From: Paramoeba atlantica
Taxonomy: Eukaryota > Protista > Discosea
Length of the DNA stretch: 24,482 bases
Direction of reading: 5' to 3'
Assembly: GCA_977017575.1 (NCBI GenBank)
Contig: CDRNVI010000128.1
Span: 1 to 24,482, forward strand
Below the pieces are notes generated by a model. The model had not been told where the DNA came from and did not search any database. It was given only the letters and a program-made list of their open reading frames with translations. Below, piece after piece: positions 1 through 24,482 of the stretch. Position 1 is the stretch's first letter, and every line of letters begins with the position of its first letter. A program made the translations under genes and the position numbers.

Positions 1-2
1 CA

Positions 3-86: not shown

Positions 87-351
87 TATTAAAAATATTA
101 AAAATATTATTTATTTTTTAAATTTTTCAAAAATAGATAAATTTATTTGATTAAAGTTAAAAGTAAAAGGTTTTAAAATAAAAAATTATATGATTAATAA
201 AAGATTAACTGTATATAATGGTCGTTATTTTATTCCAATTAAAATTATAGATAGTATGGTTAATTATATGATTAATTATTTTTTTTTTTCAAAAAATATA
301 TTAATAAAAGATAAAAAGAAAAAGAAACGTATAAAGAAAAAGAAAAAATAA
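73..351 (+). CDS. rps19: Ribosomal protein S19 (92 aa, one TGA-Trp)
   Basis: VYNGRYFIPIKIIDSMVNYMINYFFFSK matches the S19 motif VHNGK.F.PV.I.E.MVGHKLGEF. Missing from the ORF track because of the TGA at 148. Confidence 0.88.
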
Positions 352-353
352 TT

Positions 354-1544
354 ATGGGACATTTAGTTAATCCAATAACATATAGATTATCAAAAAGTAA
401 ATATTGAATTTCGTCTTGAAATAATATTACAAAAAAAAATTATAAATTATTTTTTTAGAAGATTATAATATTATTAAATTTTATAATTGAATTAAAGTTA
501 TAATTAATTGAAACAAGTTAAATTTAGAAATATTACCGTTAAATATAATTAAAACATATAAAATGATGATAATAAATTTAAATTTATTAAATGATGATAA
601 TAAATTTTTAATTAATGATATTAAGTCAAAAAAATATAAATTAAAAAAATATTATAATCAGTCAAAAAAAATATATATTTAAATCTTTTTTAAAGTATAA
701 ACAGTCAAAAAGAAAAAAAAAATATAATTTTTTAAAAGAAAAAAAAAAAAAAAAATATATATTAAATTTTTTACGTAAATTTTTTTATAGTAAAAGAAAA
801 AATTTTTATAAAAATAAAAAATATGTTTGATTTAATTATTTTTTTTGAGACATGCATAATAATAAATATTATTTATTTTATAATAAGTCTTGTAGAGGGT
901 TTTATAGAAAGAAAATATTTAAAAATATATGAAAAAAAAAATCAATAAATAATTTTAATAATTTTAAATATTTTTATAAATATAAAAATATTTATATTTA
1001 TAAAAATAATAAAAGATTAAACAATTTTATTTTTAAATATAAATGATTTAATTTATTAAGAATTCCAACTAATCGTTGATTAAATAGATTAAAATATATT
1101 AAAAATACTAATTATTTAACTTTAGATAAAAAATTTATTTTTATATTAAAAAATTTTTTATCGTTTTTTATAAAAAAAATTTTTAAAGTTAATAATCCTA
1201 TAATTAATTTTATAGATAAAAAAGAAGTAAATTATTCTACTTATTCTTTATATAAGCTAATTTTATGAAGATTGCGTGTAGGTTATAAAATAGAGCATTA
1301 TGCTTATTTATTACATAATAAATTAAAAAATGAAAGAGGTATTATAGGTTTTAAAATAGGTTATGCAGGGAGATATAAAAAAAAGTTAAGAAATAAAAAG
1401 TTTATTAAACAATTTGGTGCTATTTCACCAAGTAATATAAATTCTCCTTTAAGTTATAATCAGTTTATTTTAATTATGCGGTATGGTGTTTGTGGTGTAA
1501 AAATGAGTTATGTTAGAAAAGTGTATTTATCTTCTATAATATAA
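354..1544 (+). CDS. rps3: Ribosomal protein S3 (~396 aa), two compensating homopolymer frameshifts
   Basis: N-terminus MGHLVNPITYRLSKSKYWISSW is the S3 signature, and the C-terminus reads GFKIGYAGR...RYGVCGVK. The frame breaks at the T run 450-456 (TAG at 456) and returns at the A run 664-671. Confidence 0.85.
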
Positions 1545-1592
1545 AAAGAAAGAAAAGAGAAAAAAAGTTGATTTATTAAGAAATAAATAGAA

Positions 1593-2042
1593 ATGAAAAA
1601 AATTTTTGTCAAAAAACATTTAATATTAAATTATTCTAATACTAAAAATTCGATAGAAAAAATATATAATGGTCAATTTGCTATATATTTTTTAGAAGGT
1701 GGTATACTATATAATAATGAATTTAAGGCTTTATTATTTTTTTTAAAAAAAAGATTAAAATTTTTTACTAAATTATTTATACGTTTTCATCCAAGTTTTA
1801 AAAATACATCAAAACCTATAGGTGTTAGAATGGGTAAAGGTAAGGGTGCATTAAATGAATATTATTTTAATATATCAAAAGGTCAAATATTTATTGAATT
1901 TGGTTTTTCTAATAAATTATTTATATTAAATGATAATGATAAAAAAAAATTATTAGAATATATTAAAGGAATTGTTAAATTAGCCTCATTAAAATCAAAT
2001 ATTAAATTTAAATTAGTTTATAATAAAGAAAAATGATTTTAG
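1593..2042 (+). CDS. rpl16: Ribosomal protein L16
   Basis: TSKPIGVRMGKGKG motif. With TGA=Trp the stop is TAG at 2040-2042, not 2036. Confidence 0.95.
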
Positions 2043-2389
2043 TAGGTAGTTATTTAAATTGTAGTGATAATTCTGGTGCACGTATTGTAAAATGTATAAG
2101 AATTTATAAAAGAAAAAAATATGGATCTATTGGTGATGAAATATTAATAACTGTTAAAACAAATAATCCTAAAAAAAGAATAAAAAAAGGAGAATTATAT
2201 AAGGCTTTAATTATTAGAACTAAATATAATTTAAAAAAAAATATAAATTATTATAAATTTAGTGATAATGCTGTTGTTTTGATAAATAAAAAAAAATTAC
2301 CTTTAGGTACAAAATTATTTGGTATTAGTTTAAAATTTTTAAGATTTATAAACCGTAAAGTTTTCTTATTGATGCAAAGTATAATATAA
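2033..2389 (+). CDS. rpl14: Ribosomal protein L14
   Basis: MILVGSYLNCSDNSGARIVKCI, IGDEILITVK and FSDNAVVLIN motifs. Confidence 0.96.
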   Translation: MILVGSYLNCSDNSGARIVKCIRIYKRKKYGSIGDEILITVKTNNPKKRIKKGELYKALIIRTKYNLKKNINYYKFSDNAVVLINKKKLPLGTKLFGISLKFLRFINRKVFLLMQSII

Positions 2390-2393
2390 AAAT

Positions 2394-2951
2394 ATGAAAA
2401 GTATAGATTTCAAAAGTAATTTAAATATAATACAAAAGGATAACATTAGTAAATTGAATATAATGAGTTTTAATCAATTATCAAAAATTGATAAAGTTGA
2501 TGTAAAAGTTAAATTATATTCTTCAGATGGTAATATAGTTAGAAGGTATCTTATTTTAAATAAATTATTTAAAAAATTATTTAATCAAAGAGTTTCTATT
2601 ATAAAAATACAAAAAGAGACATTACGTAATTTTTCTGTTAGATCAAGACGTAATAATTTATCTTATTATATAGTTTTAGGATTAAGTTTAAGAAAAAATA
2701 ATATTTATTCTAATTTAAATTATTTATATAATATTATTTTTAATTTATTAGATAAAAATAATGAAAGTAGTTTAATTTATAGAAAAGAAAATAAATATAT
2801 AATAGAATTAAAAAATTTTAATTTTTTATTAGGATTAAATAGTGATGAAGATATATTGGTAAATAATTTAATTTTTAAATTAAATTTTATTATAAATTTT
2901 AATAATAATAATAATAAATTACATGAAAAAATATTTTTTAAAAAATTATAA
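2394..2951 (+). CDS. rpl5: Ribosomal protein L5 (divergent)
   Basis: Position between rpl14 and rps14. SKIDKVDV resembles PKIEKIVLN, and LSLRKNNIYSNLNYL resembles VTLRG..MY.FL..L. Confidence 0.75.
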   Translation: MKSIDFKSNLNIIQKDNISKLNIMSFNQLSKIDKVDVKVKLYSSDGNIVRRYLILNKLFKKLFNQRVSIIKIQKETLRNFSVRSRRNNLSYYIVLGLSLRKNNIYSNLNYLYNIIFNLLDKNNESSLIYRKENKYIIELKNFNFLLGLNSDEDILVNNLIFKLNFIINFNNNNNKLHEKIFFKKL

Positions 2952-3192
2952 AAATGAAAGAATATATAATAATAATAATACATTAGTATTATTATTAAAA
3001 ATTTTAAAAATATATAGGAAAAAGAAAATATTTTTTTTGAATTTTCCTATACAGAATATTTTAAGAAAGAATTTTTGTATAGAAACTGGTTTAAAGAGAT
3101 CTGTTTTTCGAGATTTTTCTTTATCTAGAATGAATATAAAAGAATCTCTTAATATGAAACAAATTAATGGTTTAAAAAAAATATCTTGATAA
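2923..3192 (+). CDS. rps14: Ribosomal protein S14
   Basis: NFCIETGLKRSVFRDFSLSRM...GLKKISW*. The canonical terminal Trp is encoded by TGA (3187), followed by TAA. Confidence 0.92.
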
Positions 3193-3195
3193 GTT

Positions 3196-3588
3196 ATGAA
3201 TTTTTTTTGTAGTCAAATTAATAATGGGTATATAGCTAATTTAAAAAGTTTATATATACCATTAAAAAAAAAGTATTTACCTATATTATCACGTTTATAC
3301 GAATTAAATTTGATAAATAGTTTTATAATATGTAATAAATACCAAATAAAAATAACATTAAAATATTATAATAATAAGCCTTTAATTTTTTTAGAACAAT
3401 TATCTTCAGGAGGTAATAAACAATATTTAAAATTTAAAACTTTTAATAAAAATTTTTCTAAATTTTATTTTAATCCTTGTTTTTATAGTAGTAATAAAGG
3501 TTTGTTAACACACGATGAAGCTTATATTATAAAAAGTGGTGGTAAAGCCTTATTAAAAGTACATCTATTATATAAAAATATATTATAA
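3196..3588 (+). CDS. rps8: Ribosomal protein S8
   Basis: KITLKYYNNKPLI and SSNKGLLTHDEA...GGKAL motifs, in spc-operon position. Confidence 0.9.
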   Translation: MNFFCSQINNGYIANLKSLYIPLKKKYLPILSRLYELNLINSFIICNKYQIKITLKYYNNKPLIFLEQLSSGGNKQYLKFKTFNKNFSKFYFNPCFYSSNKGLLTHDEAYIIKSGGKALLKVHLLYKNIL

Positions 3589-3591
3589 TAA

Positions 3592-4131
3592 ATGAAAAAA
3601 AAATTATATTTAGGAAAAAGTTCTTTATTAAATATTATACATAATAATAATAATATTTTTATGGAAAATATAATAAGTAATTATAAAAAAAATATAGATT
3701 TAACTATCTTAACTTTATTTAATCAAAAAAATATATTTATATTAAATAATAAAACATTAATTATTAAAAGAAAGAAATATTATAGTTTATTTCAAAGATA
3801 TATAAAAAAAAATTTAATTGATTTGATAAGAGGTTATTGCCTAATTTTAAATGTTATAGGTTTAGGTTTTACTATGACTATTTGAAAAGATAATGAATTA
3901 AGATTTAATATAGGTTATAATCATTTGATTTATTATAATATACCTAAAGGTATTTTAGTTAAATCTAGATCTAGAAGAAATCTTTTTTTATTTAGTAATT
4001 CTTATTTTTTGTTAAAAAAAGTATCTGTGGAAATAAAACAATTTAGAAAATTAAATGCATATAAATTGAAAGGAATAAAAGAAAAAAATGAATTATATAT
4101 TAAAAAAATTGAAAAAAAAGGAACTTATTAA
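3592..4131 (+). CDS. rpl6: Ribosomal protein L6 (joins two track ORFs through TGA at 3883)
   Basis: LNVIGLGF...FNIGYNHLIYYNIP.G...IKQFRKLNAYKLKGI matches the L6 C-terminal domain in one continuous frame. Confidence 0.9.
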
Positions 4132-4282
4132 TTCAGCAATAAGTTTTAAGGTATTATTAAATTTTAATTATAATTTAATTTATATATCATAATTATAATT
4201 TAAAATTAATTTTCGATAATAATTGACTTCAAGTTAAAAATTATTTATATGAAATGGGTATTATAAATAAACAATAAAAAAT

Positions 4283-4596
4283 ATGAATATAAAACGTTAT
4301 ATAATTAATAATTATAATATTGGTTTATCTTTATTATCTATAATATTATTTAAATTTGGTTTATTATATAATAAATCTTATAAAAATATTAATAATAAAG
4401 GTTTATTAAAACAGTTAGAAAAAAATTTGTTATATTTTTTTAAAGGAAGGAACAAATTAAACATATTAGATATAATAATATTATGAAAAAAATAGTTAAT
4501 GGTTCTTATTTTGGTTATAAACGTATTAGAGGGTTACCTATGTATAATCAACGATCAAAGACTAATAATAGATCATCGAGAAAAAAAATAATATAA
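4283..4596 (+). CDS. rps13: Ribosomal protein S13, one frameshift at A run 4486-4492; start may be ATG 4254
   Basis: The C-terminus SYFGYKRIRGLPMYNQRSKTNNRSSRK matches [25 protein letters not shown]. It is in frame 1, while the N-terminal part is in frame 2 (TAG at 4493). Confidence 0.85.
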
Positions 4597-4599
4597 GTG

Positions 4600-6219
4600 A
4601 TGAAAACTACATGATATAATAATATAATAAAACATAATATAAAAAATAATAAAATAGTTTTATTTGATAATAAAACAGATTATAATGAGTTATCTTTATA
4701 TAATTTAAATTATAAGAGTAAAAATTTTTTTATTATTAAATAATGTTATTGATGTTATTAGTGATAATATTTATTCAGAAATAAAAAATTTCAATCTTAA
4801 TTTAATAATAAATATTTATTATTTAATGAATAAATTTTTTAAATTTAATATTAATAAAAAATTTTTATAAATTAGAGTATTTAAATAATAAATATTTATT
4901 ATTGAATTTAAATAATTCTAAATCGTTTTTTGTTATAAAAGATAATTATAAAAATTTTTATAATAATTTTTTTCAAATTCTTTTATGAATTTTTTAGATT
5001 GTAATAAAAAATTTATATATAATAGAAAGTTAAGGTATAAAAATTATAATTTTTTATTATCATATAAAAATAAATTAAGAAAAAAATTGTTTTTAAAGCA
5101 AACTCGTTTTAATAATATAGATAATGAAGATTTTTTAAATTTGGACCAGAAAATGGTTTATATTTTCAAACTATAAGTAATAGTTTTAGAAAGAAAAGAG
5201 AAGAAAAGAGAGAAGAAAACAACAATTATTTCATTATAATAATAATATAATAAAAAAAACTATTTTTTTAAAAAAAGGTCAAGTATTTTTAGGTTATAAT
5301 TTTAAGTCTTTATCAAAATTAAATTTATTTAATTTAGATTATATAAAATTTAATAATAATTTTTATATAAGAAAAAATATTGTCTTGAAAAGAATAAAAA
5401 AAATTTATTTTTATTATTTAGAAAAGAAAATTTATTAAAATATTATAATAAAAAATATTTAAAATATAAAAAATTTAATATAAAAAATTTTTATAATAAT
5501 TATTATTTTTTATTTAAAAATTATTGTATAAAAAAAATAAAAATAAATTATATAGAAAGAGAAAAATTTTAATTAAAAAAAAATTTAAAAATAAATTATA
5601 TAATTATAATTTATTTTAAATAAACTAAATTTATTTAAAAATAAAAAAGAAAAGAGAAATTTATTTAATATTAGATATAATTTTTTTTATAAAATATATA
5701 ATATTAATTTATGAAAAAAATATAAAAGAAAAGAGAAATTTTTAGATATATAAAAAGAATAAAAAATAACTTTTATTCTTTAAAATTATATAAAAGAAAA
5801 GAAAAAAGAATAAAATTATATAATTATTCATATTTAATTAAAAGAAAAAAATTATTAAATTATAATTTTTTATATTTTATAAAAAATTTATATATTAATA
5901 GTATTTATAATAATATTAAAAATAAATTTTTATATAAAAATTATAAAAAATTTTATATAATGAATAAATTTTTATATACTATTAATTCGAATATTGATTA
6001 TAAAATATTAAAATATTTTTAATAATATTAAATAATATTAAATTATTAAATAATTATAAAATTTCTAAAAATGTTAAAAATTTCTTTTTTAAGAATAGTT
6101 TTAATAACATATTAAAAAAAAGAAATTGAAAACAAATAAATAAATATTTATATTTTCGTATTTTTTAATAAATATAATTATAATAAAATTAATAATTATA
6201 AATATAAAAAGAAAAAAAT
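4600..6219 (+). other. Coding-like low-complexity region: chain of short open frames that switch at homopolymers
   Basis: ATG at 4600 directly follows rps13. Successive open stretches (e.g. 4742-4867, 4985-5173, 5726-6019) have the same amino-acid bias as the 6220-8073 ORF. Confidence 0.45.
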
Positions 6220-8073
6220 TAAAAATTTATAAATATAAAAAGAAAAAATTCAAAATTTTTTATTATTAAAAAATCAACAACAAAAGAAAAAAAAATATAT
6301 AAATTTGATAAATTTTTTTATAATATTTCTTTAAATTTAATTAAATTAAATAAATTACATAAAAAAAAGGGAATAAAGAAAAAAAATTATTTTAATAATA
6401 ATAAAAATATGAAATCTTTAATAAATTATTATATTTACAATTATAATAATAAAGATTTATTGAATTTTAATATTTATAATTATAATTGTAAATATAATAA
6501 ATTTAATAAAGATTATTGTTCTCATAAATATAAAAATTTTAAAGTTTATAAATATAAAAATTTTATATTTAATAGTTATGAATTAGATTATTACGATATA
6601 ATAAATAAATTTCATAAAAAAAAATGAAATTTTTATATTATAAATGAAAAAGAAAAGAATGATTTATATTATAAATGAAAATCTATAAAGATACCTTATA
6701 ATAATTTTTTAGTATTTTCTTGTAATATTAATTGTGAAAATTATTTAATAAAAGTTTTAACTAAGATTAAAAAGAATTATATTTTTTATTCAAAAAATTT
6801 ATTAAATAATAATTCAATTATATCTAAAAGAAAAGAGAATAAAAGTTTAAAAAAGAGAAATTTTATATCTTATAATTGTAATTTAATTGATAATTTAAAA
6901 TTAAATAAAAGAAAAGAGAAAAATTTAAAATCTTGAACTTATTATTTATTTATAAATAATAATTTAATAAAAGAAAAGAGAAAAATAATTTTAAAACCAA
7001 TAAAAGAAAAAAAAAATATTAAAAACTCAATTTGTTTATGAAAAAAAAGAAATTGATTTATAAATAAATCTTTTACTCAGAAGAGTTCATATTTAAAATT
7101 TTATAATAGAAAGAAGAAAGTATTTATATTAATTCAAAAAAATAATTTAAAGAAAAGAGAAAAAAAATTATTAAATTTATATTTAACAGGAAAAAAGAGA
7201 AGATTCTATAGGTATAATAATATTACATCTTTTTTTTTAAATTATAAGTTTATTAATAATAATAAAACATTATTATTTAAACAAATGAAAAAAAAATTAA
7301 AAATTTTATTTAAAAAAGGTTTATTTAAAAAAAGTAGTATGTATTTTTTTAGAAGAACATTATTAGTAGAATATCCTAAATGATCATTAATAAAAGAAAA
7401 TTATTTTAAACGTAATGAAGATAATATAATGTCGTATTTATCAAAATATATACATTTTAAAATTTATAATATATATAGAAAAATATATAATATTGATTTA
7501 TTATTTTTAAAACGAATTAATCAATATAAAAATTTTAGTAAACTAAATTATTCAAAAATTTTAATTAATATTAGAAGTAATTTGTTACAATATTTTTATA
7601 ACAAAAATAAGACTTTCAAAAGTTTTATTAAAAATAAAGTTTACTATAATAAATTTTTAGTAAAAAATGTATCAATAAAAAATTATATATTATTTAATAA
7701 TATTAATGATTATACTAATAATTATAAAAATATAAATAATTTGAAATATAATAATTCTATATATAGTTATTATAAATATTTTTTAAAATTAGTATTATTT
7801 AATAATTTGATTTTAAAAAATAATTATACTAAAAAAATAAATTGTGATATTAGTTTATTTATTACTAAATTTATGAAAAATTTAAATATAATATATAAGT
7901 ATATATATAGTATTAAGTATTCAAATAAAAAAAATTTAAATTATTATTCAAAATTAAATGAAATAAATTTTTTTAATAATATTTATGACTATGATTATAG
8001 TTTATTAAATAATAATAGCTTAATAAATTATAAATTAAATACTGTTACTTTATTAAATTCTAAAAAATATTAA
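6220..8073 (+). CDS. Unassigned K/N/Y/F/I-rich mitochondrial ORF (617 open codons in code 4; probably continues upstream to ATG 4600 via frameshifts)
   Basis: I read frame 1 line by line from 6220 to TAA at 8071 and found no TAA or TAG despite very high AT. It joins track ORFs 6409 and 7429. No recognisable motif. Confidence 0.7.
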
Positions 8074-8311
8074 TTAAATAATATTTAATTAATAAATTTA
8101 AAAAGAAATTTTTAAATTTGAATATTATTATTAATTTGAATAATAATAATATTTTTAAAATAAGGTAAAAAGAAAAAAATATTTTTATCTTATATATGTT
8201 TGCACCTTCAAGATGTTGTATAGAAAAAGAAAGAAAAGAATAAACGTGAAAAAATGATTAAGAAAATTATTTAGTAATTAAATTATAGTAATAAAAAAAA
8301 AAATTATTATT

Positions 8312-8692
8312 ATGCCACAATTAGATTTAGGAATTTTATTTTTAGAATTAGTTTTAAATTTTATATTTTTTTGATTAATTTATATTTATTATGCAAGATA
8401 TATATTCCCTTTAATAAATAAAACTATTAAATTAAGAAAATATAAATTAAAATCTATAATAAAAAGATTATTATTATTAGAATCAAATATTTTATTTATT
8501 ATAAAATTAAATTTAAGTATTTTATTAAATAATAATTTTTTATTAAATAAATTTGTTGTTTTATTAAAATCTAAAATTAATAATATTAAAATTATTATTT
8601 TTAGTAAATTATATATATTAGGTTTAAATTTCTTAAAAAAAGAATCTTTATTAAATAAAAAATATTTTATAATAAAAACAATATATAAATAA
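8312..8692 (+). CDS. atp8: ATP synthase subunit 8 (126 aa)
   Basis: Starts MPQLD, followed by a hydrophobic helix with TGA-Trp (8372) and PLINKTIKLRK. Absent from the ORF track. Its stop overlaps the cob ATG (TAATG). Confidence 0.92.
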
Positions 8693-9840
8693 TGAGATTA
8701 GTTAAAAAAGATATTTTTGTAAATGCATTTTATAATGCTTTAGTAGTTTATCCAGCTCCTGCTAATATAACTTATGCTTGAAATTTAGGAGTTAGTGCTG
8801 GTTTGTTTTTAATTATTCAGATTTTAACAGGTGTTATTTTAGCTATGTATTATACACCTAATGCTGATTTAGCTTTTGCTAGTGTTAGACATATAGTTAA
8901 TGATGTACATTTTGGTGATATGCTAAGAATGTACCATGCTAGTGGATCATCAGTTTTTTTTTTTGTAATATATTTACATGTATTTAGAGGTTTATATTAT
9001 GGTTCATATACTTATCCTAGACAATTTGTATGAGTATCTGGTGTTATAATATTATTAATTATGATTATAACAGCTTTTGTAGGTTATGTTTTACCTTGGG
9101 GTCAAATGAGTTTTTGAGCAGCAACTGTTATTACTAATTTAGTGTCAGTTATACCTTTTGTAGGTAATGATATATTATTATGATTATGAGGTGGATTTTC
9201 TGTTGATGAAGCTACATTACATCGTTTTTTTAGTTTACATTATTTATTACCTTTTGTTATAGCAGCTTTAGCTGGAGTTCATATTATATTATTACATGAA
9301 GTTGGTTCTAATAATATATTAGGTATTAATCATAAGGTAGATCAAATACCATTTCATCCTTATTTTGTTTTTAAAGATTTATTTAGTTCATTATTATTAT
9401 TATTTGGTTTTAATATGTATGCTATAAAACATACTCCAAGTATAATAGACGCAGATAATTATTTAGAAGCAAATCCTTTAGTAACACCCGTACATATCGT
9501 ACCAGAATGATATTTTAAAGCTTTTTATGCAATTTTAAGATCTGTACCAGATAAAGCAGGTGGTTTTATCTTATTAGTTTTATCTATTATTGTTTTAATA
9601 ATATTTCCATTTTATGTGAAAGCACCTATAGTTAGTGGTTATTTTAGACCTATTTATAATTTAGGTTTTTGATTATTTATTATGGATTTTATTACATTAA
9701 CCTGAATAGGAGGTAAACCTATAGAAGAACCTTATTATTTTATAGGTCAAATGGCTACAAGTTTTTATTTTATATATTTTATTATATTGTTACCTGTTAT
9801 TGTTAAATTAGAAAAATCATTATATAAAAATATTACTTAA
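8692..9840 (+). CDS. cob: Apocytochrome b (382 aa)
   Basis: [23 protein letters not shown], heme His residues and PEWY. The frame is uninterrupted with TGA=Trp. Confidence 0.99.
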
Positions 9841-9844
9841 ACAT

Positions 9845-10348
9845 ATGAATAAAATTTTTAATTTTATAATTTTTTATATTTCTATATTATTTTTAGTTAA
9901 TATGTTTTCAAATCATTTATTTTTTTTTAATTCTGTTGGTAATTTATTAATTATAATTATATTATTAATTATATCTTTATTTACTTTTTATATTTCTTCG
10001 TTAAAAAGTAATTTCTTAATTATAAAAAAAAATGAAATATATAAACAATATTATTTAAAATTATTAAAACTATATTATATTTTTTATTTATATAAAAATA
10101 TAATATTTCAAAATATTTTAATATCTACATTTCAAAATTATTATTTTAAATTTATAATTTTATTTTATAATATTAATTTAAATATATTATTAAATTCTAT
10201 ATCAAATTTATATAGTTATTTATATAATAATTTTTTAAATACTTTTTATATTAATAATTATTTTATATTTAGTATTAAATTTAAATTATTAAATCAAATA
10301 AACTATAAAAATTTTATTTTTAAAAAATATTTTACTATAAAAAAATAA
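9845..10348 (+). CDS. Membrane-anchored ORF167, possibly ATP synthase subunit b (atp4/orf25/ymf39)
   Basis: Hydrophobic N-terminal ~50 aa followed by a K/N/Y-rich tail. Size and topology fit atp4, but no diagnostic motif was recognised. Confidence 0.45.
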   Translation: MNKIFNFIIFYISILFLVNMFSNHLFFFNSVGNLLIIIILLIISLFTFYISSLKSNFLIIKKNEIYKQYYLKLLKLYYIFYLYKNIIFQNILISTFQNYYFKFIILFYNINLNILLNSISNLYSYLYNNFLNTFYINNYFIFSIKFKLLNQINYKNFIFKKYFTIKK

Positions 10349-10351
10349 TAT

Positions 10352-10708
10352 ATGAATTTTGAATATAGTATAATTATTATCTCTATATCATTAAGTATGA
10401 TTATTTCTTTAGTATTATTTTCTATTATTTTACTTCTTATTTATTCAAAATTTGGGATAGAAAAAGTTTCAGCATATGAATGTGGTTTTCACCCTTTTGA
10501 AGATACTAGACATAATTTTAATGTAAGATTTTATTTAGTATCTATTTTATTTTTAATTTTTGATTTAGAAATAATATTTTTATTTCCATGATTGACTTTA
10601 GTTAATTTTTTAGGAACAAGTGGTTTTTTAGTAGTATTGATTTTTATTACTATATTAACTATAGGTTTCATATATGAATGATTAAAAGGTGCTTTAACCT
10701 GAGAGTAA
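10352..10708 (+). CDS. nad3: NADH dehydrogenase subunit 3
   Basis: [31 protein letters not shown] and YEWLKGALTWE*. Confidence 0.98.
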
Positions 10709-10726
10709 AAAATTATTTTATATATT

Positions 10727-11479
10727 ATGAATAAATTTTTTCAACCATTAGATCAATTTGATATATTTTCTTTATATATAAATTTTTATTTTAGTGATTT
10801 TTATATAACAAACTTATTTATATATTTATTTATTATTTTTTTTATAATAAATATTATAACAAGTAATGTATTATTATCTAAATTAAATTTAGTTTATAAA
10901 TCGTTATGACAATACATATATGAGAATTTTATATATTTATTTCCGTTAAATGTTTTAGTTACACAAGTAGGTAAAAGAGGTGAACCATATTTTGTTTATA
11001 TAGCTAGCTTATTTTATTTTATATTAATAGCAAATTTTATTGGTTTAGTACCAAGTTCTTTTACTATTACAAGTCATATAATTTTAACATTTTTATTAGG
11101 ATCAATTACTGTTATAGGATTAACTATAATAGGTTTTTTAAAACAAAAATTACATTTTATACAGTTATTTATACCAAAAGGTGTTCCTAATATTTTATTA
11201 CCTATGTTAATAGGTATCGAAGTTATTTCTTATATTGCAAGAGGTTTTAGTTTATCTATACGGTTATTTGCAAATTTAATGTCGGGACATTCATTAATAC
11301 ATATTTTATTATTTTTTATTGTAAAAATATTAAAATTTAATTATATTATAGGTATTTTAGGAATATTATTAATAACTGTAATTTTTTTATTAGAGTTTGG
11401 TATTTCATTTTTACAAGCTTATGTATTTATTGTTTTAGTTTCTATTTATTTAAAAGATTCTTACGAAGCTGGACATTAA
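10727..11479 (+). CDS. atp6: ATP synthase subunit 6/a (250 aa)
   Basis: FQPLDQF N-terminus, NFIGLVPSSFTITSH and SLSIRLFANLMSGH with the essential Arg. One frame through TGA at 10907. Confidence 0.98.
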
Positions 11480-11497
11480 AAAACATTTATTTTAACA

Positions 11498-11818
11498 ATG
11501 TTTAATATCTTAATTCCTTTTGAAACATTTATACCTATTTTAAGTTTTAGTTTATTTATTATAGGTATAGCGGGTATTTTTATTACACGTAGAAATATAA
11601 TAATAATAATAATGTCTATAGAGTTAATTTTAGCATCTGTAAATTTATTATTTATTTTTTTATCAATATATTTAGATGATATATATGGTCAGATATTTGC
11701 TTTATATATATTAACTATAGCAGCTTCTGAATCAGCTATTGGTTTAGGATTAATAGTTATTTATTATAGATTAAGAGGTATTATATCTATAGATTATATT
11801 AGTACTATAAAAGGTTAA
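11498..11818 (+). CDS. nad4L: NADH dehydrogenase subunit 4L
   Basis: RRNIIIIIMSIEL and IAASESAIGL motifs, ending KG*. Confidence 0.97.
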   Translation: MFNILIPFETFIPILSFSLFIIGIAGIFITRRNIIIIIMSIELILASVNLLFIFLSIYLDDIYGQIFALYILTIAASESAIGLGLIVIYYRLRGIISIDYISTIKG

Positions 11819-11837
11819 ATTTTTTTATATACTTTTT

Positions 11838-13856
11838 ATGTATTTATTAGTATTATATTTACCATTAATAAGTTTTTTAATTATAAGTTTTTTTGGGCGT
11901 TTATTAGGAAATAAAGGTAGTTTTATAATTGCGAATTTTAATATGTTATTAACAGTGTTGTTATCATATTATATTTTTTATGAAACTGTATTAAAAGGTT
12001 CTGTATGTTTTTTAAAATTATTTTCATGATTTAATATAGGTTTATTTAATGTAACATGAGGATTTATTTTCGATCCTGTAACAGGTGTTATGTTAATTGT
12101 AGTAAATACAATATCTTTATTAGTTCATTTTTATTCAATAGGTTATATGTATAATGATCCTTTTTCTTCTCGATTTGTATCTTATTTATCATTATTTACA
12201 TGATTTATGTTAATGTTAGTTACAGCTGATAATATATTACAATTATTTTTAGGTTGAGAAGGTGTTGGTTTAGTATCTTATTTATTAATTAATTTTTGAT
12301 TTACAATAGCAGATGCAAACAAAGCTGCAATTAAAGCTATTATTATGAATAGAATAGGTGACATTGGAGTTGGTTTAGGTATATGTTTAATATATTTAGA
12401 ATATAAAACATTAAATTTTAGTATAATATTCGCAATAAGTGATATGTGTCAATTTGATTATATTTATTTTATAAATAATTATTTTAATACAATAACTTTG
12501 ATAACTATTTTTATATTAATTGGAGCTATGGGAAAATCTGCACAATTAGGTTTACATACTTGATTACCGGATGCTATGGCTGGTCCAACACCAGTTTCTG
12601 CTCTTATACATGCAGCAACAATGGTTACAGCTGGAGTATTTATTTTAATAAGATTATCACCAATGGTTGAATATTCAGCTATTGGTTTATGAATTATAAC
12701 TTTAGTTGGTGTTTTAACTAGTTTTTTTGCAGCAACTATAGGTTTATTTCAAAATGATATAAAAAAGGTTATAGCATATTCAACTTGTAGTCAATTAGGT
12801 TATATGGTGTTTATATGTGGGTTATCAAATTATTCACTAAGTTTATTTCATTTAACTAATCATGCTTTTTTTAAAGCATTATTATTTTTAAGTGCGGGGG
12901 CTATTATACATGCTTTATCTGATGAACAAGATATAAGAAAATATGGAGGGTTAATTAAATTATTACCTTATAGTTATATTATGATGTTAATAGGTTCTTT
13001 AGCATTAATGGGTATACCTTTTTTAACAGGGTTTTATTCTAAAGATGTTATAATTGAAATTACTTATATATCATATATAATAGATAGTTCTTTTATTTAT
13101 TGATTAAGTGTTATAGCAGCTTTGTTTACATCATTATATAGTATTAGGTTATTAGTATATGTTTTTATAACATCACCTAATGGTTATAGAAAAATGTTTG
13201 AATTAATACATGAATCTAATATTTTTATGTCTTTACCTTTATTTATATTAGCTTTAAATAGTATATTTTTTGGTTATATTAATAAAGATTTATTTATAGG
13301 ATTAGGTAATGATACTTGATTAAATTGATTAAATATAATTTCAACTAGAAATATTTTAATTTTAGAATCAGAATTTTTACCTTGATATATAAAAAATATT
13401 CCTTTTTTTTTTAGTATGTCTGGTATAATAATTATTTTTTTAATAAATTATTATTATACTTATTTATATAAAGTTTTAAGAAGTAATAATTATTTATATT
13501 TTAAAAGATATAATAATATTGCAAGTTTTTTTTCTTATAAATGGTATGTGGATACTATTTATAATAAAATAATTTTAGGAGGTTTTATTAAATTATCCTA
13601 TATAGTATTTAAAAATATTGATAGAGGTATTATAGAATTAATAGGGCCTTTAGGTTTAGTTAGATTATGAAATTCTTTAAGTATTAATTATAAATATTTT
13701 TTCCCAACAGGTTATATTTTTAATTATTTGTTCTTATTTATTATTTCATCTGTTAGTTTAATTATATTCTATATATTACCTATAAATAATTTAAATAGTG
13801 AATTATTATTTATATTAATTGCTATAATTTTAATAAATAAATATAAAAATAAGTAA
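11838..13856 (+). CDS. nad5: NADH dehydrogenase subunit 5 (672 aa)
   Basis: [43 protein letters not shown] and HAFFKALLF. Five track ORFs share frame 3 and are joined by TGA-Trp. Confidence 0.98.
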
Positions 13857-13873
13857 AATTTTTTTTAAAACAT

Positions 13874-14461
13874 ATGGATCAAAATTTATTTTATATATTT
13901 TTTTTTATAATAAGTATTGTATCGGCTATTTTAGTAATAATTTCTAAAAATCCTTTACATTCTATTATTTATTTAATATTAGTTTTTTGTAATATAGTTT
14001 TTATATTATTATTGTTGGAGTTGGAATTTATGTCTATGGTGTTTTTAATAGTTTATATAGGTGCAATAGCAGTATTATTTTTATTTATTATTTATATGTT
14101 AAATATAAAAGTTATAGAATTGAATGAATTAAATATAAAATATTTGATAGGTATTATATTATTAACTTTATTAATAATATTTTTAATTTATTTATATTAT
14201 ATACCGATTAATGTAATTTTTAATATAGATTCCTCAAACAATAATAATTATATAAATTATTATAATATTTTATATAATATATCAAATTTAAATTTGATAT
14301 CTTTAATATTATACGATAAGCATTATATATTATTTATAATACTTAGTCTTATATTATTATTAGCTATGATTGGTGTTATTATATTAACATGTAAAAGAAC
14401 ATATTATCTAAAAGAACAGGTAATTTTTGAACAAAATAAAAGGTTTATAAAGAATCCATAA
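13874..14461 (+). CDS. nad6: NADH dehydrogenase subunit 6
   Basis: [15 protein letters not shown] and [14 protein letters not shown] motifs. Confidence 0.96.
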
Positions 14462-14462
14462 A

Positions 14463-16493
14463 ATGAATAATTATAAAATAAATAATATTGCAGTTAAAGA
14501 TAATAATATGAAAACTATATTACAATTATGTAATATGATTAATATAGATATACCAAAATTTTGTTATCATGAACAATTATCTATAGCAGGTAATTGTAGA
14601 ATGTGTTTAGTTGAAGTAAAAGGAGCTATAAAACCTATAGCTTCTTGTGCATCCCCTTTAAATAATAATATGCATATATTAACTAATACTAAATTAGTTA
14701 AAAAGGCTAGAGAAGGTGTTTTAGAATTTTTATTATTAAATCATCCATTAGATTGTCCTATTTGTGATCAAGGAGGTGAATGTGATTTACAAGATCAATC
14801 ATTAATTTTTGGTAATGATAGAGGTAGATTTTATGAAAATAAAAGATCTGTTAATGATAAAGATTGTGGACCTTTAATAAAAACTATTATGACAAGATGT
14901 ATTCATTGTACTAGATGTATACGTTTTATAGATGAGTTTATTGGTTATAAATATTTTGGTTTGATAGGTCGAGGACAAAATATAGAAATAAGTAATTTTT
15001 TATCAAAAAATATTAATTCGGAATTATCTGGTAATTTAATTGATTTATGCCCTGTAGGTGCTTTAACTTCTAAACCTTATTCATTCATTTCTAGACCTTG
15101 AGAACTTATTTCTTGAAATACTATAGATATTAATGATTTATTACATATAAATATTAGAATAGATATTAGAGATAGTGAAATATTAAGAGTTTTACCTTTA
15201 TTTAATGATTATATACATGAGATCTGAATCTCAGATCTAACTCGTTTTTCTTATGATAATCAAAAGAATAATCGAATAATTAATCCTTTAAAAAAGGAAG
15301 GTGCAAATAAATTTATTATATATAGTTGAGAAAAAGTATTAAATTTAATATTAAAAAAATGTTTAAATAGTAATTTACATTTTTTAATAGGTGATAATAT
15401 AGATAGTGAAACTGCTTTAGTAATAAAAAAAGGAAAAAATTATTTTAATAATCATGAATTTACTATTAATTATAAAAAATTAACTAGGAATTCAAATAAT
15501 CGTAAAAATTATATTTTAGATTATAATATATATAAAGAATTAAATGAATTTAAAAATATTATATTAATTAATATAAATATTAGATTAGAATATCCTTTAT
15601 TAAATATAAAGTTAAAACGATTTAAAGATTTAAAATTATTAAATATTTATAATATAGGGACCTCTTATAATCAAAATTATAAAAATATAAATTATTCATC
15701 TAATTTATTAGAAGTAAAAAAATTTATAGAGGGAAAATCTTTATTAAATAATATTGTATTAAAAGCATCTAAAAATTTAATTTTATTAAATGATAATACT
15801 TTATTTAATTTTTTAATTACAACATTGAAAAATTTAAATTTAGAATCAAGTATTAATATAGGGTTTTTAAATAATTTAAATATAAATATTATAGCTAATG
15901 AATTAAATTTATTTAATTCATTAGTAAAATTTAATGATTATAGTTTTAAAAAAATGATTTATAAAGAAAATAATATTTTATATAATTTAAATAATTATAA
16001 TTATAATTATTTAAATTATAATTGTGATTATAATATTTTTCAAGGTTGTTATTTACCTATATTAAAAGAAATTAATAATTATGATTTATTATTACCATCA
16101 ATAACTCATTATGAAAAAAAAAGTTTATTTATAAATATATTTGGTTATTGTCAATCGACAAAATTTATTTTATTTCCGCCGAAGAATGCAAGAAATGATT
16201 GAAAAATATTATATATATTATTTAAAACAATTATTAGTGATGAAAAGATTATGAAATTATCTTTTAGTAATATTAGATTATTATTAAGTTCTTATAATAT
16301 AAATATAAATACTATATTAAATATATATAATAATAATGAAATATCAAATTATAAAAATATTATGGTTTTGAAAAATAAAAATTTATATAAAAATATGACT
16401 AATATATATTCTAATAATAAATTTTTACAATCATCAAAAATTTTAAACAGTTGTTTAATTAATTCTAAAAAAATATATAATAATTTTCATTAA
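14463..16493 (+). CDS. nad11: NADH dehydrogenase subunit 11 / 75 kDa (676 aa, unsplit)
   Basis: Fe-S motifs [32 protein letters not shown] and CIHCTRC...C. A continuous frame runs to TAA at 16491, and the C-terminus shows LPSITHYEK. Confidence 0.96.
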
Positions 16494-16506
16494 AAGATTT
16501 TAAAAT

Positions 16507-17493
16507 ATGAATTTTTTGTTAACTTTAATTATAACAATATTAAAATATTTAATTTTAATAGTACCTGTATTAGTAACTGTAGCTATTTTTACAGTTTTTG
16601 AAAGAAAAGTTATGGGTTATATACAACGAAGACAAGGTCCTATAAAAGTAGGTTTTTTAGGTATTTTGCAACCTTTTGCCGATGGTTTAAAATTAATGAT
16701 AAAAGAACCTGTTATACCGGTAAATTCAAATTATTTAATGTATATAGCAGCTCCAATATTAACATTATTATTAAGTTTAATAAATTGAATATTAATACCT
16801 TTTGATGAAAATGTAGTAATATCTAATATTAATATAGGAGTTTTGTTTATTTTGGGTATTTCTTCTTTAAGTGTATATGGTGTTATTATAGCTGGTTGAG
16901 CTAGTAATTCAAAATATGCATTTTTAGGTGCTCTTAGATCTGCTGCACAAATGATATCTTATGAAGTATCTATAGGTATAATATTAATAACTCTTCTAAT
17001 AGGTGTAGGTTCTTTAAATTTAAGTAATATAGTATTAGCTCAAGAGGATATTTGATTTATTATACCATTTTTTCCTTTATTTTTATTATTTTTTATATCT
17101 TCTGTTGCAGAAACTAATAGACACCCTTTTGATTTACCTGAGGCAGAAGCAGAATTAGTTTCTGGTTATAATGTAGAATATTCATCAGTAGGATTTGCTT
17201 TTTTTTTTATCGGTGAATATGCTAATATTATATTAATGAGTGCATTAAATGTAATTTTATTTTTAGGAGGTTGATTACCACCTTTTAATTTTAATTTTTT
17301 TTTACCGCCTATAGTATGATTTACAATAAAAATTGTTTTAATGATATTTTTATTTATAGTAATAAGAGCCATGTTACCTAGATATAGATATGATCAATTA
17401 ATGATATTAGGTTGAAAAGTATTTTTACCGTTATCATTAGGTTTATTAGTTTTCTATGCAGGTATAATGATTGGTTTTGATTTTTTACCTTAA
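16507..17493 (+). CDS. nad1: NADH dehydrogenase subunit 1 (328 aa)
   Basis: [47 protein letters not shown] and [25 protein letters not shown]. Confidence 0.99.
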
Positions 17494-17526
17494 TTTTTTA
17501 GAATAATAAAATATAAAAAATTTTGA

Positions 17527-18350
17527 ATGTTATTAAAAATTTTACTTTTTTTACCATTATTTTTTGCGTTTATTTTAAGTTTAATACCTAAGAAAAAAAT
17601 TATATTATTAAAACAATTATCTTTATTATTTAGTATAATAATTTTTTTTTATTGTATTAAATTATTAGGTAATTTTAATATATATTATTCGTATATTCAA
17701 TTTCAATCAAGTATTAGTTATTATCCTGGTATGGATTTTAGTATAGGTATAGATGGTATTTCTATTTTTTTTATATTATTAATGAGTTTACTTTTACCTA
17801 TTTCGTTATTAGTAAATTGAGAAAGTGTGAAATATCGTAATAAAGATTTTACTATTACTTTATTTATATTAGAATTTTTAGTTTTTGTATTTTTTGTTGT
17901 TTAGATATATTTTTTTTTTATATATTTTTTGAAGGTGTTTTAATACCTATGTTTTTTATTATAGGTATATGAGGTTCAAGACAACGAAAAATTCATGCTG
18001 TTTATCAATTTTTTTTATATACTTTTTTTGGATCAATATTTATGTTAGTATCTTTTTTAATAATTTACTTACATGTAGGTTCTACAAATTGAAATATAAT
18101 TAAATATATTGAATTTTCTGATCAACGACAATTAATATTATGATTAGGTTTTTTTATAGCATTTGCTATAAAAGTACCAATGATACCTTTTCATATATGA
18201 TTACCAGAAGCTCATGTCGAAGCACCTACAACAGGTTCTATCTTATTAGCTGGTATTTTATTAAAATTAGGTACTTATGGTTTTTTAAGATTTTTATTAC
18301 CTTTATTTCCTTATGGAATGAAATTTTTTTCACCTTTAGTTATAGTTATG
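17527..18350 (+). pseudogene. nad4: NADH dehydrogenase subunit 4, 5' ~275 codons only; frameshift near 17890-17903; cut by junction
   Basis: [51 protein letters not shown]. There is a TAG at 17902 in frame 1 and the gene continues in frame 3. Homology stops after FSPLVIVM. Confidence 0.93.
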
Positions 18351-18352
18351 AC
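18345..18352. other. Junction between mitochondrial and gammaproteobacterial DNA
   Basis: nad4 frame (...gtt atg) and mlaC frame (tat gac ttt gat gtg) overlap on 'gttatgac'. GC content and TGA meaning change here. Confidence 0.9.
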
Positions 18353-18474
18353 TTTGATGTGGAAGGCGTTAGTATGTTACGCAGTTTTCGCAGTCAATTT
18401 GCTGAGGAACTTGCTAGAAATAATAGCCTAGATGCATTAATTAATACGCTACAGCAACATAATCGTGACGTCAA

Positions 18475-18478
<4 letters not shown>
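18347..18478 (+). pseudogene. mlaC: MlaC/Ttg2D phospholipid-binding protein, C-terminal 43 aa only
   Basis: [32 protein letters not shown] matches the MlaC tail YD..VEGVS....R.QF...L....D.LI. The TGA stop overlaps the mlaB ATG (ATGA). Confidence 0.88.
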
Positions 18479-20069
<1,591 letters not shown>

Positions 20070-20109
20070 TAGTGAAGTACTATTCGGGAAAACGTCAAAG
20101 GAAAGATAC

Positions 20110-20871
20110 ATGACAACAACGTTAACTGAATTAGTTAAATACTGTGATCGTTTATTGGAAAGCGATAGCTTTCATGATTATTGTCCGAATGGTTTACAAG
20201 TACAAGGTAAACAAAACATTACTACGATTGTATCCGGAGTAACTGCATCGCAAGCCTTACTCGATGCGGCTGTGACACTACATGCTGATTTAGTATTGGT
20301 ACATCACGGTTTCTTTTGGCGTGGTGAACAACCGCAAGTCACTGGGATGAAACGTAACCGTCTACATACATTATTGCAACACGACATCAGTTTGCTGGCT
20401 TATCATATTCCCTTAGATGCCCATCCTAAATTAGGTAATAACGTACAATTAGCCAAACAATTAGGGATACGCGTTACTGATACATTTCCCACTGAATTCA
20501 CCCCAAGCATTGGTTTTGTCGGCAAATTAACTGAACCCATGCCAACAGAACAATTTGCTGAACACATTGCAACGGTACTACAACGTAAACCGTTACATAT
20601 TAAAACTCATCAGCGTCCGCTGCAAACCATTGCCTGGTGTAGTGGCGGTGCCCAAGATTATATTGAAACAGCAGCAAATTATGGTATCGATGCTTACTTG
20701 TCTGGTGAAATATCAGAACGCACCACACACAGTGCACGTGAATTAACTATTGATTATTTTAGTGCTGGGCACCATGCGACTGAACGTTATGGGATAAAAG
20801 CATTAGGTAAACATCTAGCAAGTAAATTTGATCTAACTTGTGAGTTTATAGATATTGACAATCCAGTCTAG
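20110..20871 (+). CDS. Nif3/YbgI-family dinuclear metal-centre hexameric protein
   Basis: DYCPNGLQVQG, VHHGFFW, YHIPLDAHPKLGNN and AGHHATERYG. Confidence 0.95.
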   Translation: MTTTLTELVKYCDRLLESDSFHDYCPNGLQVQGKQNITTIVSGVTASQALLDAAVTLHADLVLVHHGFFWRGEQPQVTGMKRNRLHTLLQHDISLLAYHIPLDAHPKLGNNVQLAKQLGIRVTDTFPTEFTPSIGFVGKLTEPMPTEQFAEHIATVLQRKPLHIKTHQRPLQTIAWCSGGAQDYIETAANYGIDAYLSGEISERTTHSARELTIDYFSAGHHATERYGIKALGKHLASKFDLTCEFIDIDNPV

Positions 20872-20887
20872 CATATACTCTGCGCCC

Positions 20888-20919
20888 TTGAATTGTAGGC
20901 TTTGTTGGCTACAATCCAA
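20888..20919. terminator. Imperfect hairpin between convergent nif3 and trfA-like genes
   Basis: TTG-A-ATTGTAG / CTACAAT-C-CAA pairs at 10 of 11 positions with a 10-nt loop. It has no clear U tract. Confidence 0.3.
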
Positions 20920-20946
20920 TTGCTTGAGTCTATACTTCGTTATAAA

Positions 20947-21717
20947 TCAAATGTACTTTAACTTTTCTAGTTTAGCATGTTGCGCTGATACCACACCATG
21001 TTGCGACACCCTCCAATTGTTATCGATAAATCCAACCTGTGTTAATTGTTTTAATACGATCAGTAACCGTTTTTTAAAGTTACCACGACGTTTTTCGTTA
21101 GTTCCACAATATAACTGTAAGCTATCCAATTCAGTAACGGGAATAGTTTTATATGTTGACCAAAAACCATGTAACCAACGTGCCAACCCTCTTGGTAATG
21201 CCATACGTTGTGATAAATTAAGCACAACTGCTGCCGTTGTATTAATAAACTGAACATACTCTGGGTTAAATACAAATACAATTTGTTTACCTGCACGCTC
21301 TAAACATAATGTTGTAAAAAACTGTCCATGGAAATGTTGCTTACCATAATAAATACAACATTCCACATTAGCTAAACGGTTTACGACTGTCTGTACTAGT
21401 TGATAATCAGTACGGCCGTAATGTCGATTGTTTAAGACAGCAAATAATTGGCTAAGTGATATTCGGCAAGTTAGATCGGTTGGTAATTGAATTGAATACG
21501 TGTGAACTGTTAGTAATGTTGTTAAATAATGCAATGCCAATACTATATCACCATCATATTGTGACAAATATGCACCGCGATATCCGATGTGTTGTGCTGT
21601 TAAACTCGCGACTGTATGCGTAGTTATTCGCTGATCTCGACGTGCCATACCAAACAGAGATGAACGCAGTAATGCCACATTAGCACACCCTGGGGACTGC
21701 CATGGGTTGCTAATCAT
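20947..21717 (-). CDS. TrfA-like (IncP-type) replication initiator homolog, 256 aa
   Basis: LLRSSLFG, IGYRGAYLSQYD.DI and LARWLHGFWST...LQLYCGT...FKKRL...LKQL..VGFI...W parallel the TrfA motifs RSALF, ITYTG.EL..DD and ...SH..P...LETFRLMCGS...G.V..AW. An AAGGT RBS-like sequence lies upstream. Confidence 0.7.
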   Translation of the reverse strand: MISNPWQSPGCANVALLRSSLFGMARRDQRITTHTVASLTAQHIGYRGAYLSQYDGDIVLALHYLTTLLTVHTYSIQLPTDLTCRISLSQLFAVLNNRHYGRTDYQLVQTVVNRLANVECCIYYGKQHFHGQFFTTLCLERAGKQIVFVFNPEYVQFINTTAAVVLNLSQRMALPRGLARWLHGFWSTYKTIPVTELDSLQLYCGTNEKRRGNFKKRLLIVLKQLTQVGFIDNNWRVSQHGVVSAQHAKLEKLKYI

Positions 21718-21870
21718 TTTGTTACCTTGCTATTACTGCATTGATGAGTTTATTCTAACATATTGATTTTGATTGCAAATATGATTATTCTATACGTCAC
21801 CAAAAAATGTCAGCTTTGAGTATACACTAAAAAAATAAAAACCAATTTCTGCATTTTGCAAGTTAAATTG

Positions 21871-23232
21871 TTATACCCCAGCAACTGTCATCTGCTCTAA
21901 TAAAATAGATCCGGAATGAATACGCCCACGTCGATCGACATCGTTGGCAACAGCCACTAAATTTAACCATAAATCAGCTAAATTGCCTGCAATAGTAATT
22001 TCAGCAACTGGGTATTGGATGGTACCATTCTCTACCCAAAAACCAACAGCACCACGTGAATAATCGCCAGTAACAATATTAACTCCTTGCCCAATTAATT
22101 CAGTAACTAGCAATCCTGTACCCATTTGTTGACATAATTGCGGCAATGTTAAGTCACTATGGTTAATCATTAAATTATTAACGCCACCTGCATTCCCCGT
22201 TGTTTGTCTATTTAACTTACGAGCACTGTAGCTACTTAATACATACGATTGTAATTCACCTTGCTCGACAAATGTCTTAGTACGAGTCGCCACACCATCA
22301 CCATCAAATGCACGACTACCCATTGCTTTGGGTAAATGCGGCTGCTCACTGATTGAAATGTGTTTTGCACATACAGACTGTTGCAATTTATCTAACAAGA
22401 AACTGGCTTGGCGGTATTGGCTAAGGCCACTAATTGCTGACACTAAATGGCCAACAAATCCTCTGGCTATCTCAGCTTGTAAAATAACCGGGACTTGAGT
22501 TGTCACAATCGGCTTTGCATGTAAACGCGCAACTGCACGTTGCCCTGCTTGCTTTCCAATAATAGCTGCATTGTCTAATTCATTTGGATCACGCGCGACG
22601 GTATAACTATAATCACGTTGCATATCATCTTGTTCACTGGCAACTGGCACACAATGTAAGCTGTGTGATGAACTGGCATACGTACCTACAAAACCATGAC
22701 TATTGGCATACAAACGTATACCATTACTCGTTGACACACTGGCACCATCTGAATTAGTAATACGTTGATCAACATCACGTGCTGCTTGTTCGGCATTACA
22801 GGCTAATTCAATTGCTTGCGGTAATTCAATTGACCAAGGATGATATAAGTCTAGTTCCAGAACATTGGTAGCCATTAAGTCACGATCAGCTAACCCTGCA
22901 TACGGATCATCTGTTGCATACTGTGCAAATTGACAAGCTGCCTCAACCGCCGAATCAATTGCAGCAGTGGTTAAATCCGTTGTCGATGCACTGCCCTTAC
23001 GTTTACCAAAATAAACCGTGATCCCAATCCCATTATCACGCTGATATTCAACTATTTCCACATCACCTAAACGTACATTTACTGAAAAACCATTATCAAT
23101 GCTTGCTGATACCTCAACAGCAGTCGCACCACGTTGTTTTGCCTGTGCTAACACACGTTGTGCCAATATGGTTAATCGGTCGGTTATTTGTTGTGGATTA
23201 TCAATTAAATGAATTAAATTAGTTGTTGACAC
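21871..23232 (-). CDS. pmbA: Metalloprotease PmbA (TldE)
   Basis: SVNVRLGDVEIVEYQRD.G.GITVY.G.RKGSASTTD, MQRDYSYT, FDGDGV and TGDYSRGAVGFWVENG. GTG start with a GAGG RBS. Confidence 0.95.
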   Translation of the reverse strand: MSTTNLIHLIDNPQQITDRLTILAQRVLAQAKQRGATAVEVSASIDNGFSVNVRLGDVEIVEYQRDNGIGITVYFGKRKGSASTTDLTTAAIDSAVEAACQFAQYATDDPYAGLADRDLMATNVLELDLYHPWSIELPQAIELACNAEQAARDVDQRITNSDGASVSTSNGIRLYANSHGFVGTYASSSHSLHCVPVASEQDDMQRDYSYTVARDPNELDNAAIIGKQAGQRAVARLHAKPIVTTQVPVILQAEIARGFVGHLVSAISGLSQYRQASFLLDKLQQSVCAKHISISEQPHLPKAMGSRAFDGDGVATRTKTFVEQGELQSYVLSSYSARKLNRQTTGNAGGVNNLMINHSDLTLPQLCQQMGTGLLVTELIGQGVNIVTGDYSRGAVGFWVENGTIQYPVAEITIAGNLADLWLNLVAVANDVDRRGRIHSGSILLEQMTVAGV

Positions 23233-23296
23233 GTATTACCTCATTTTAAAAACCATTATTATTTGCGTAGAACGGTTATGCTAGGGTATATTAACA

Positions 23297-23453
23297 GCCG
23301 CCAGTTTAGCGTGGGTTCGGACCAATATACTCAAAGCGTTTTGAATTTAGGCGAGGCGGCAACCCTGGATAATCTCCGATTTCCAGGGCAAGGCTGCTCT
23401 TCGAATCAAAAGGAGTGTATTGAAATACATGACTTTTGTGAGAAAGCGCAGCC
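23297..23453. other. Structured GC-richer intergenic element (three stem-loop domains)
   Basis: GCCGCC/GGCGGC (23297/23355), CCCTGGA-t-AATC/GATT-TCCAGGG (23363-23388) and GGCTGC/GCAGCC (23392/23448). The last pair encloses CAAAAG/CTTTTG and TGTAT/ATACA. Confidence 0.35.
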
Positions 23454-23512
23454 AACAAAGCATAAATTTAAAACGTGAAGAGTATAGCAATGTTAAGCCA
23501 GTCGGAGCAAAT

Positions 23513-24178
23513 ATGAAAACACAGGATATTTTACATCAACCAACCCAATTTTCTAACTTCTTTACCGTACACCATCCACTGCTATTACATAAGTTATCTC
23601 TGCTACGCGATAAACGTACACCTAACAAACAATTCCGCGAATTAGTCAAAGAAATTACCATCTTGTTGGTATATGAAGTAACACGCAATTTAACCACGCA
23701 GTCCACAACCATTGAAACACCAATAACAACGATGCAAGCACCTCAACTATCTGGCAAACAACCGGTGATCTTACCCATTTTGCGTGCTGGGCTTGGCATG
23801 GTTGATGGAATTTTATCGTTAATGCCTATGGCTAAAATAGGTCATATTGGCTTATACCGTGATGAAAAAACATTAAAGCCCGTATCCTATTATTTTAAAA
23901 TTCCTGATGACAGTGCTGATAGGCAATGTTATGTATGCGATCCGATGCTCGCCACTGGCGGATCGGCTGTCGCTACGATTAAGCAATTAACACAACGTAA
24001 TATTAGTGATATTACCTTTGTCTGTTTAGTTGCATCTCCTGAGGGAGTTGAACAATTTTGCAAAGCGCACCCAACTATTCCTGTTTATGCTGCAGCATTA
24101 GACGAACGGTTAAATGAAAATGGTTATATCGTTCCTGGTTTAGGGGATGCAGGTGATCGGTTATTTGGAACACATTAG
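23513..24178 (+). CDS. upp: Uracil phosphoribosyltransferase (start probably ATG 23513, not TTG 23420)
   Basis: [45 protein letters not shown] and [20 protein letters not shown] lies 5 nt before ATG 23513. Confidence 0.97.
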
Positions 24179-24482
24179 TGACACAGTGCACAAACTATAA
24201 TTAATCACTGTATCGATAATTCAGATTAATTGACAGCGGTAATTCATTGCACTTATTGACACGCTGAATATGCTTTTTTTAAATACTGATTAAAAAAATA
24301 AATAAACAATTTACGAGCACACTTAGAGAGTTGAGCCTTGATCAAGTATGCTTGTACCGATATAGTAATTTCTTGTGTAGTCTTCGCTGGCGTGTTGCTC
24401 TCTATTTTACCTTTAACTGAATGAGTCAACAGATAACATACTGCACGTGCACGAGAGCGAGCAGTTACTAAAAACTTGGTTT

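Follow-up and report, generated by a model that had tools for sequence, protein, structure and literature searches.

The window, i.e., the whole 24,482-nucleotide stretch analysed here (contig CDRNVI010000128.1 of the Paramoeba atlantica assembly GCA_977017575.1), is composed of a mitochondrial and a bacterial part. Positions 1-18349 on the forward strand represent protist mitochondrial DNA of the amoebozoan type, which uses genetic code 4 and has a GC content of 15.8%. The assignment is based on code-4 open reading frames as well as on gene calls and Pfam matches in the matching contigs. This part is collinear with a section of a 39,429-bp mitochondrial contig, ctg3923c (see below), and position 1 falls mid-genome. 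Its genes are, in this order, rps19, orf396, rpl16, rpl14, orf185, rps14, rps8, orf179, two small ORFs, and orf1159, which is broken. It is followed by orf126, cob, orf167, nad3, atp6, nad4L, nad5, nad6, nad11 and nad1, with the 5' portion of nad4 at the end. Located downstream of the ribosomal-protein cluster, orf1159 (4600-8073) is an orphan ORF of 1159 codons for which no Pfam match was found. Homopolymer indels break it in the window, and three public contigs carry an unbroken version, e.g., ctg3923c (locus L007, 721-4200) and ctg2721l (L003, 12568-16047). The nad4 fragment (17527-18349, forward strand) was delineated from ORFs, Pfam and intact homologous copies and comprises codons 1 to approximately 275 of 490. 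A one-base homopolymer deletion at 17882 (T5 versus T6) causes a frameshift that distributes this fragment over two frames. Scans of the window for tRNA genes (ARAGORN) and for Rfam families found nothing, and the 18.3 kb on the mitochondrial side thus yielded neither a tRNA gene nor an rRNA; the mitochondrial RNA genes must lie together in the remaining 21 kb of the genome. For comparison, the mitochondrial genome of Paramoeba pemaquidensis CCAP 1560/4 comprises 48,522 bp (PMC5601477) versus the 39,429 bp observed here.

The bacterial part starts with the tail of mlaC (18347-18478, forward strand; Pfam MlaC), consisting of the last 43 of 221 codons and a TGA stop. The latter is overlapped by the start of mlaB (ATGA; 18475-18783, forward strand), which encodes a STAS-domain protein of 102 aa that is identical to its counterpart on the bacterial contig ctg4025c introduced below. 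Profile matches identified murA, encoding UDP-N-acetylglucosamine 1-carboxyvinyltransferase (18804-20069, forward strand, 421 aa), a gene of the NIF3/DUF34 family (20110-20871, forward strand, 253 aa), and a pmbA/tldE metallopeptidase gene (21871-23232, reverse strand, 453 aa). Between nif3 and pmbA, an ORF of 256 aa (20947-21717, reverse strand) occupies the same place as on the intact chromosome; searches of Pfam, NCBIfam and PHROGs gave no match for it. The last gene is upp (23420-24178, forward strand), encoding uracil phosphoribosyltransferase, whose start is uncertain and which is called as a 249-aa product on ctg4025c. Across its 6.1 kb, the bacterial part displays an intact operon structure and bacterial composition. 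The bacterium is a gammaproteobacterium with a GC content of 39%. Its MurA finds the best match among the species representatives of GTDB in an uncultured gammaproteobacterial MAG (68%); uncultured MAGs rank on top, and Legionella and Coxiellaceae MAGs reach 63-64%.

The transition from mitochondrial to gammaproteobacterial DNA at 18347-18349 is an abrupt switch without any intermediate zone. The GC content rises from 15.8% (1-18346) to 39.2% (18350-24482), with the step being confined to ~60 bases. The usage of TGA differs as well: on the mitochondrial side of the join this codon is read as Trp (code 4) and occurs 29 times in frame in four mitochondrial genes, versus not once in seven bacterial ORFs. 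Window positions 18201-18353 match the Pfam domain Proton_antipo_M at its positions 105-152 of 294, and this partial match implies that nad4 is cut inside its core domain. Relative to an intact nad4, the break falls into codon 275 of 490. Conversely, positions 18347-18475 match the MlaC profile from 131 to 166 of 166, i.e., its tail only, and relative to an intact mlaC the remnant commences with codon 179 of 221. These data bear out the original prediction of a sharp mitochondrial-bacterial fusion, mid-gene on both sides, at which nad4 ends after about 275 codons, the last 43 codons of mlaC follow, and the meaning of TGA changes.

The overlap between the two parents, originally thought to comprise ~6-8 ambiguous bases (gttatgac), turned out to be shorter. 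A three-way comparison of the window, the mitochondrial contig ctg8206 and the bacterial contig ctg4025c traces mitochondrial identity through 18349 and bacterial identity from 18347 onwards. The bases common to both parents are TAT only (18347-18349), and the intact mlaC reads GTGTATGAC where the longer overlap had been placed. Given the base composition on either side, a random join would share three or more bases with a probability of about 0.07; the sharing of TAT is explained by chance, and no recombination mechanism is needed. The surroundings of the join contain neither inverted or direct repeats nor a target duplication, and a profile search of the window revealed no transposase or integrase to its right. 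This agrees with what had been noticed initially, and an insertion by a mobile element was ruled out on these grounds. The window is free of N letters, and the join is part of a continuous sequence.

Intact nad4 and mlaC, which the original prediction had suggested looking for elsewhere, were both recovered from public assemblies: mlaC on a 2.45-Mb contig and nad4 on several mitochondrial contigs. The bacterial parent was retrieved by an exact-product look-up of the MlaB protein of the window. It is represented by ena:ERZ24900291:ctg4025c (2,447,832 bp) of a metagenome assembly, which carries the complete series mlaF-mlaE-mlaD-mlaC(221 aa)-mlaB-murA-nif3-orf256-pmbA-upp, with the intact MlaC of 221 aa at L001 9339-10004. 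Positions 18347-24482 of the window are 99.97% identical to this contig over 6.1 kb, the differences being one substitution in the NIF3 gene (20545, A in the window and G in ctg4025c) and one T7/T6 homopolymer (24274). Judging from the suffix "c" of its name, ctg4025c is probably circular, as is the mitochondrial ctg3923c. The bacterial contig appears to be a complete gammaproteobacterial genome.

For the mitochondrial parent, the TGA-free proteins Rpl14 and Nad6 were used as look-up queries. The contigs found are ERZ24900291:ctg3923c (39,429 bp; L007), which stems from the same assembly as the bacterial ctg4025c, ERZ24894578:ctg2721l (36,635 bp; L003 and L006), ERZ26167977:ctg8206_4.78x_l (36,348 bp; L004 and L005), ERZ26867466:ctg18297_2.01x_l (11,899 bp; L008), and Logan contigs of the runs ERR14835898 and ERR14835899 (5,420 and 2,595 bp; L009 and L010). 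The comparisons covered window positions 1-17040 and 17150-18500, and the mitochondrial side is 99.8-100% identical to loci L003-L010. An uninterrupted nad4 of 490 codons runs across the join point in ctg8206 (L005 7903-9375) and ctg18297 (L008 5491-6963), and both contigs show nad1, then the intact nad4, then nad2. The mitochondrial genes that lie downstream of the join point (nad4, nad2, orf201, rps4 and atp1) all have TGA codons. A third mitochondrial contig, the linear ctg2721l from another metagenome assembly, follows the true nad4 sequence for 25 nt beyond the join point, where the contig ends (L006 14481-14505). In a 39-kb genome, a contig would end by chance within ~50 nt of any particular site with a probability of ~0.3%. 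The likeliest reading is that the assembly of ctg2721l was built from a read set that includes the chimeric read, with the assembly graph branching at this point. If this holds, reads along the true nad4 path exist in the data of ERZ24894578. Alternatively, the end of ctg2721l could mark a preferred physical break site.

The comparison with the parents also allows judging the quality of the contig itself. Positions 4109-6221 contain 17 clustered differences that set the window apart from all other assemblies, namely ~16 single-base indels and one substitution (4164). At every site of this cluster, loci L003, L004, L006 and L007 agree with each other against the window. The indels are mostly changes in homopolymer length and they break the 1159-codon ORF, which indicates a consensus of low quality. 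A further substitution specific to the window is located at 10455. Nearly all departures from the two parents are one-base homopolymer indels. As far as can be judged from the sequence comparison, this error pattern is that of a thinly supported long-read consensus without any sign of evolutionary decay; the latter is unlikely because substitutions would then dominate.

Records of the junction in other data sets were also considered. The 112-aa ORF that spans the junction has no record in the exact-product look-up, a weak negative from a look-up that depends on gene calls. Similarly, a 34-mer across the junction is absent from the JGI metagenome contigs and the window-specific NIF3 variant (20545) has no record in the exact-product look-up, both of which are weak negatives. 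When words were sampled from positions 16800-19900, 80-98% of them were present in four runs of one study. A run of a different study, filed under a different organism, contained 52% of the words of this region, and a marine metagenome 6%. The high values in the four runs show that host and bacterium co-occur across four samples of one study. Such word sharing is expected with both organisms in each sample, and it is also compatible with a junction that is present in several of them. The run with about half of the words accordingly contains just one of the two partners. The bacterium represented by ctg4025c, which accompanies the amoeba in the four samples, may live in stable association or symbiosis with it.

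In summary, the assembly-level evidence makes it very probable that the contig is a sequencing or assembly chimera, and the junction is almost certainly present in neither organism's genome, as judged from the contigs compared here. Each side is nearly identical to its parent, the switch is abrupt, and no signature of recombination was detected. Moreover, both parents exist in uninterrupted form elsewhere, with ctg3923c and ctg4025c being part of one and the same assembly (ERZ24900291). The original prediction had favoured a chimeric read or a mis-join. In light of the intact parents the chimera is supported, whereas a mis-join based on sequence overlap was ruled out by the mere three bases in common. 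As so few shared bases do not permit an overlap-driven join by the assembler, the junction would have to be carried by one or more chimeric reads or molecules.

A plausible route to such a chimera starts with a fragment of the host mitochondrial genome and a fragment of the co-sequenced gammaproteobacterium, which would have been united in a single molecule or read during library preparation. Possible mechanisms are the ligation of fragment to fragment and a template switch in the course of amplification. With coverage being low, the chimeric read may have been retained as a path by the assembler, giving rise to the contig of 24.5 kb. As the latter is mitochondrial over three quarters of its length, it could then have escaped removal when the eukaryotic assembly was decontaminated. 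The mode and timing of chimera formation, as well as its support by one or very few reads, are what we infer from these data.

Three other explanations were considered. The junction might be real and exist in vivo in a minority of cells, where mitochondrial DNA was joined into the bacterial mlaC by illegitimate recombination at the level of microhomology or, conversely, bacterial DNA entered some mitochondrial genomes. In favour of such a hybrid, the join is continuous without N letters, four samples of a single study contain the bacterium together with the host, and the position at which ctg2721l ends, 25 nt beyond the join, might point to a preferred break site. Consensus assemblies would not show a minority subpopulation with a real junction. 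Still, this scenario is very unlikely, as mlaC and nad4 are intact on the bacterial and mitochondrial contigs of other assemblies. With regard to an integration into the bacterium, the 2.45-Mb contig that should be the recipient has an uninterrupted mlaFEDCB locus and lacks the expected insertion, and the junction was not recovered in independent assemblies by the non-exhaustive look-ups described above. The bacterium could not make use of genes written in code 4, and both mlaC and nad4 would be inactivated. Additionally, the contig starts inside mitochondrial DNA and contains no second junction, there is no mobile element, and the consensus is rich in errors.

A real junction would imply the same direction as the eukaryote-to-bacterium transfer known from amoeba-associated bacteria, for which the eukaryote-like genes of Legionella are an example. 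To our knowledge, transfers of this kind concern single, ameliorated and expressed genes that are fixed in the bacterial genome. In contrast, the window would combine mitochondrial DNA in code 4, unaltered over 18 kb, with the disruption of a conserved gene, and this arrangement is missing from the intact bacterial chromosome contig.

A second explanation places the sequence in the nucleus of the amoeba, as a very recent NUMT that adjoins laterally acquired bacterial DNA. The contig does belong to a eukaryotic assembly, and organelle or bacterial DNA in such an assembly is what NUMTs and lateral transfers into nuclear genomes look like. They differ from the present case, where nuclear flanks and decay are missing and the halves are identical to free replicons of the same sample. 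The window contains zero nuclear sequence, its two parts are 99.8-100% identical to free replicons with differences that are nearly all homopolymer length errors, and the 6.1 kb of bacterial DNA keep their operon structure and bacterial composition. A nuclear insertion is thus highly improbable. Equally hard to credit is a purely computational mis-join of two contigs with no read across the junction: low coverage and data from mixed organisms do favour assembly errors (related contigs bear coverage tags of 2.01x and 4.78x), but three shared bases are far too few for a join by overlap or k-mer, and there is no N gap such as a scaffolder leaves.

The technical chimera, by comparison, has known counterparts. 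In one benchmark, chimeric alignments were found in 0.8% of bulk HiFi reads and in 60-70% of HiFi reads after MDA, and standard assemblers produced misassemblies from chimeric HiFi reads (bioRxiv 10.64898/2026.06.11.730069). The contig resembles chimeras that arise when libraries are prepared or whole genomes amplified (PacBio HiFi bulk, low-input, MDA) in that unrelated, abundant templates are joined with base precision and 0-3 shared nucleotides, the same data contain both parents in intact form, the length of the contig is read-like, and the consensus is rich in homopolymer errors. Among classic MDA chimeras, inverted self-joins are frequent. The present join differs from these in that it connects two replicons.

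The significance of a chimeric contig lies primarily in quality control, as it can be mistaken for a spectacular reverse transfer from organelle to bacterium or for a lateral gene transfer. It adds 6 kb of bacterial genes to the gene set of the protist and should be flagged or removed. If the library was amplified, caution would be advised for structural novelties elsewhere in the assembly that rest on single contigs. Should the junction instead exist as a real minority molecule, a stretch of 18 kb or more from the host mitochondrion in mlaC would represent an organelle-to-bacterium transfer caught as it happened.
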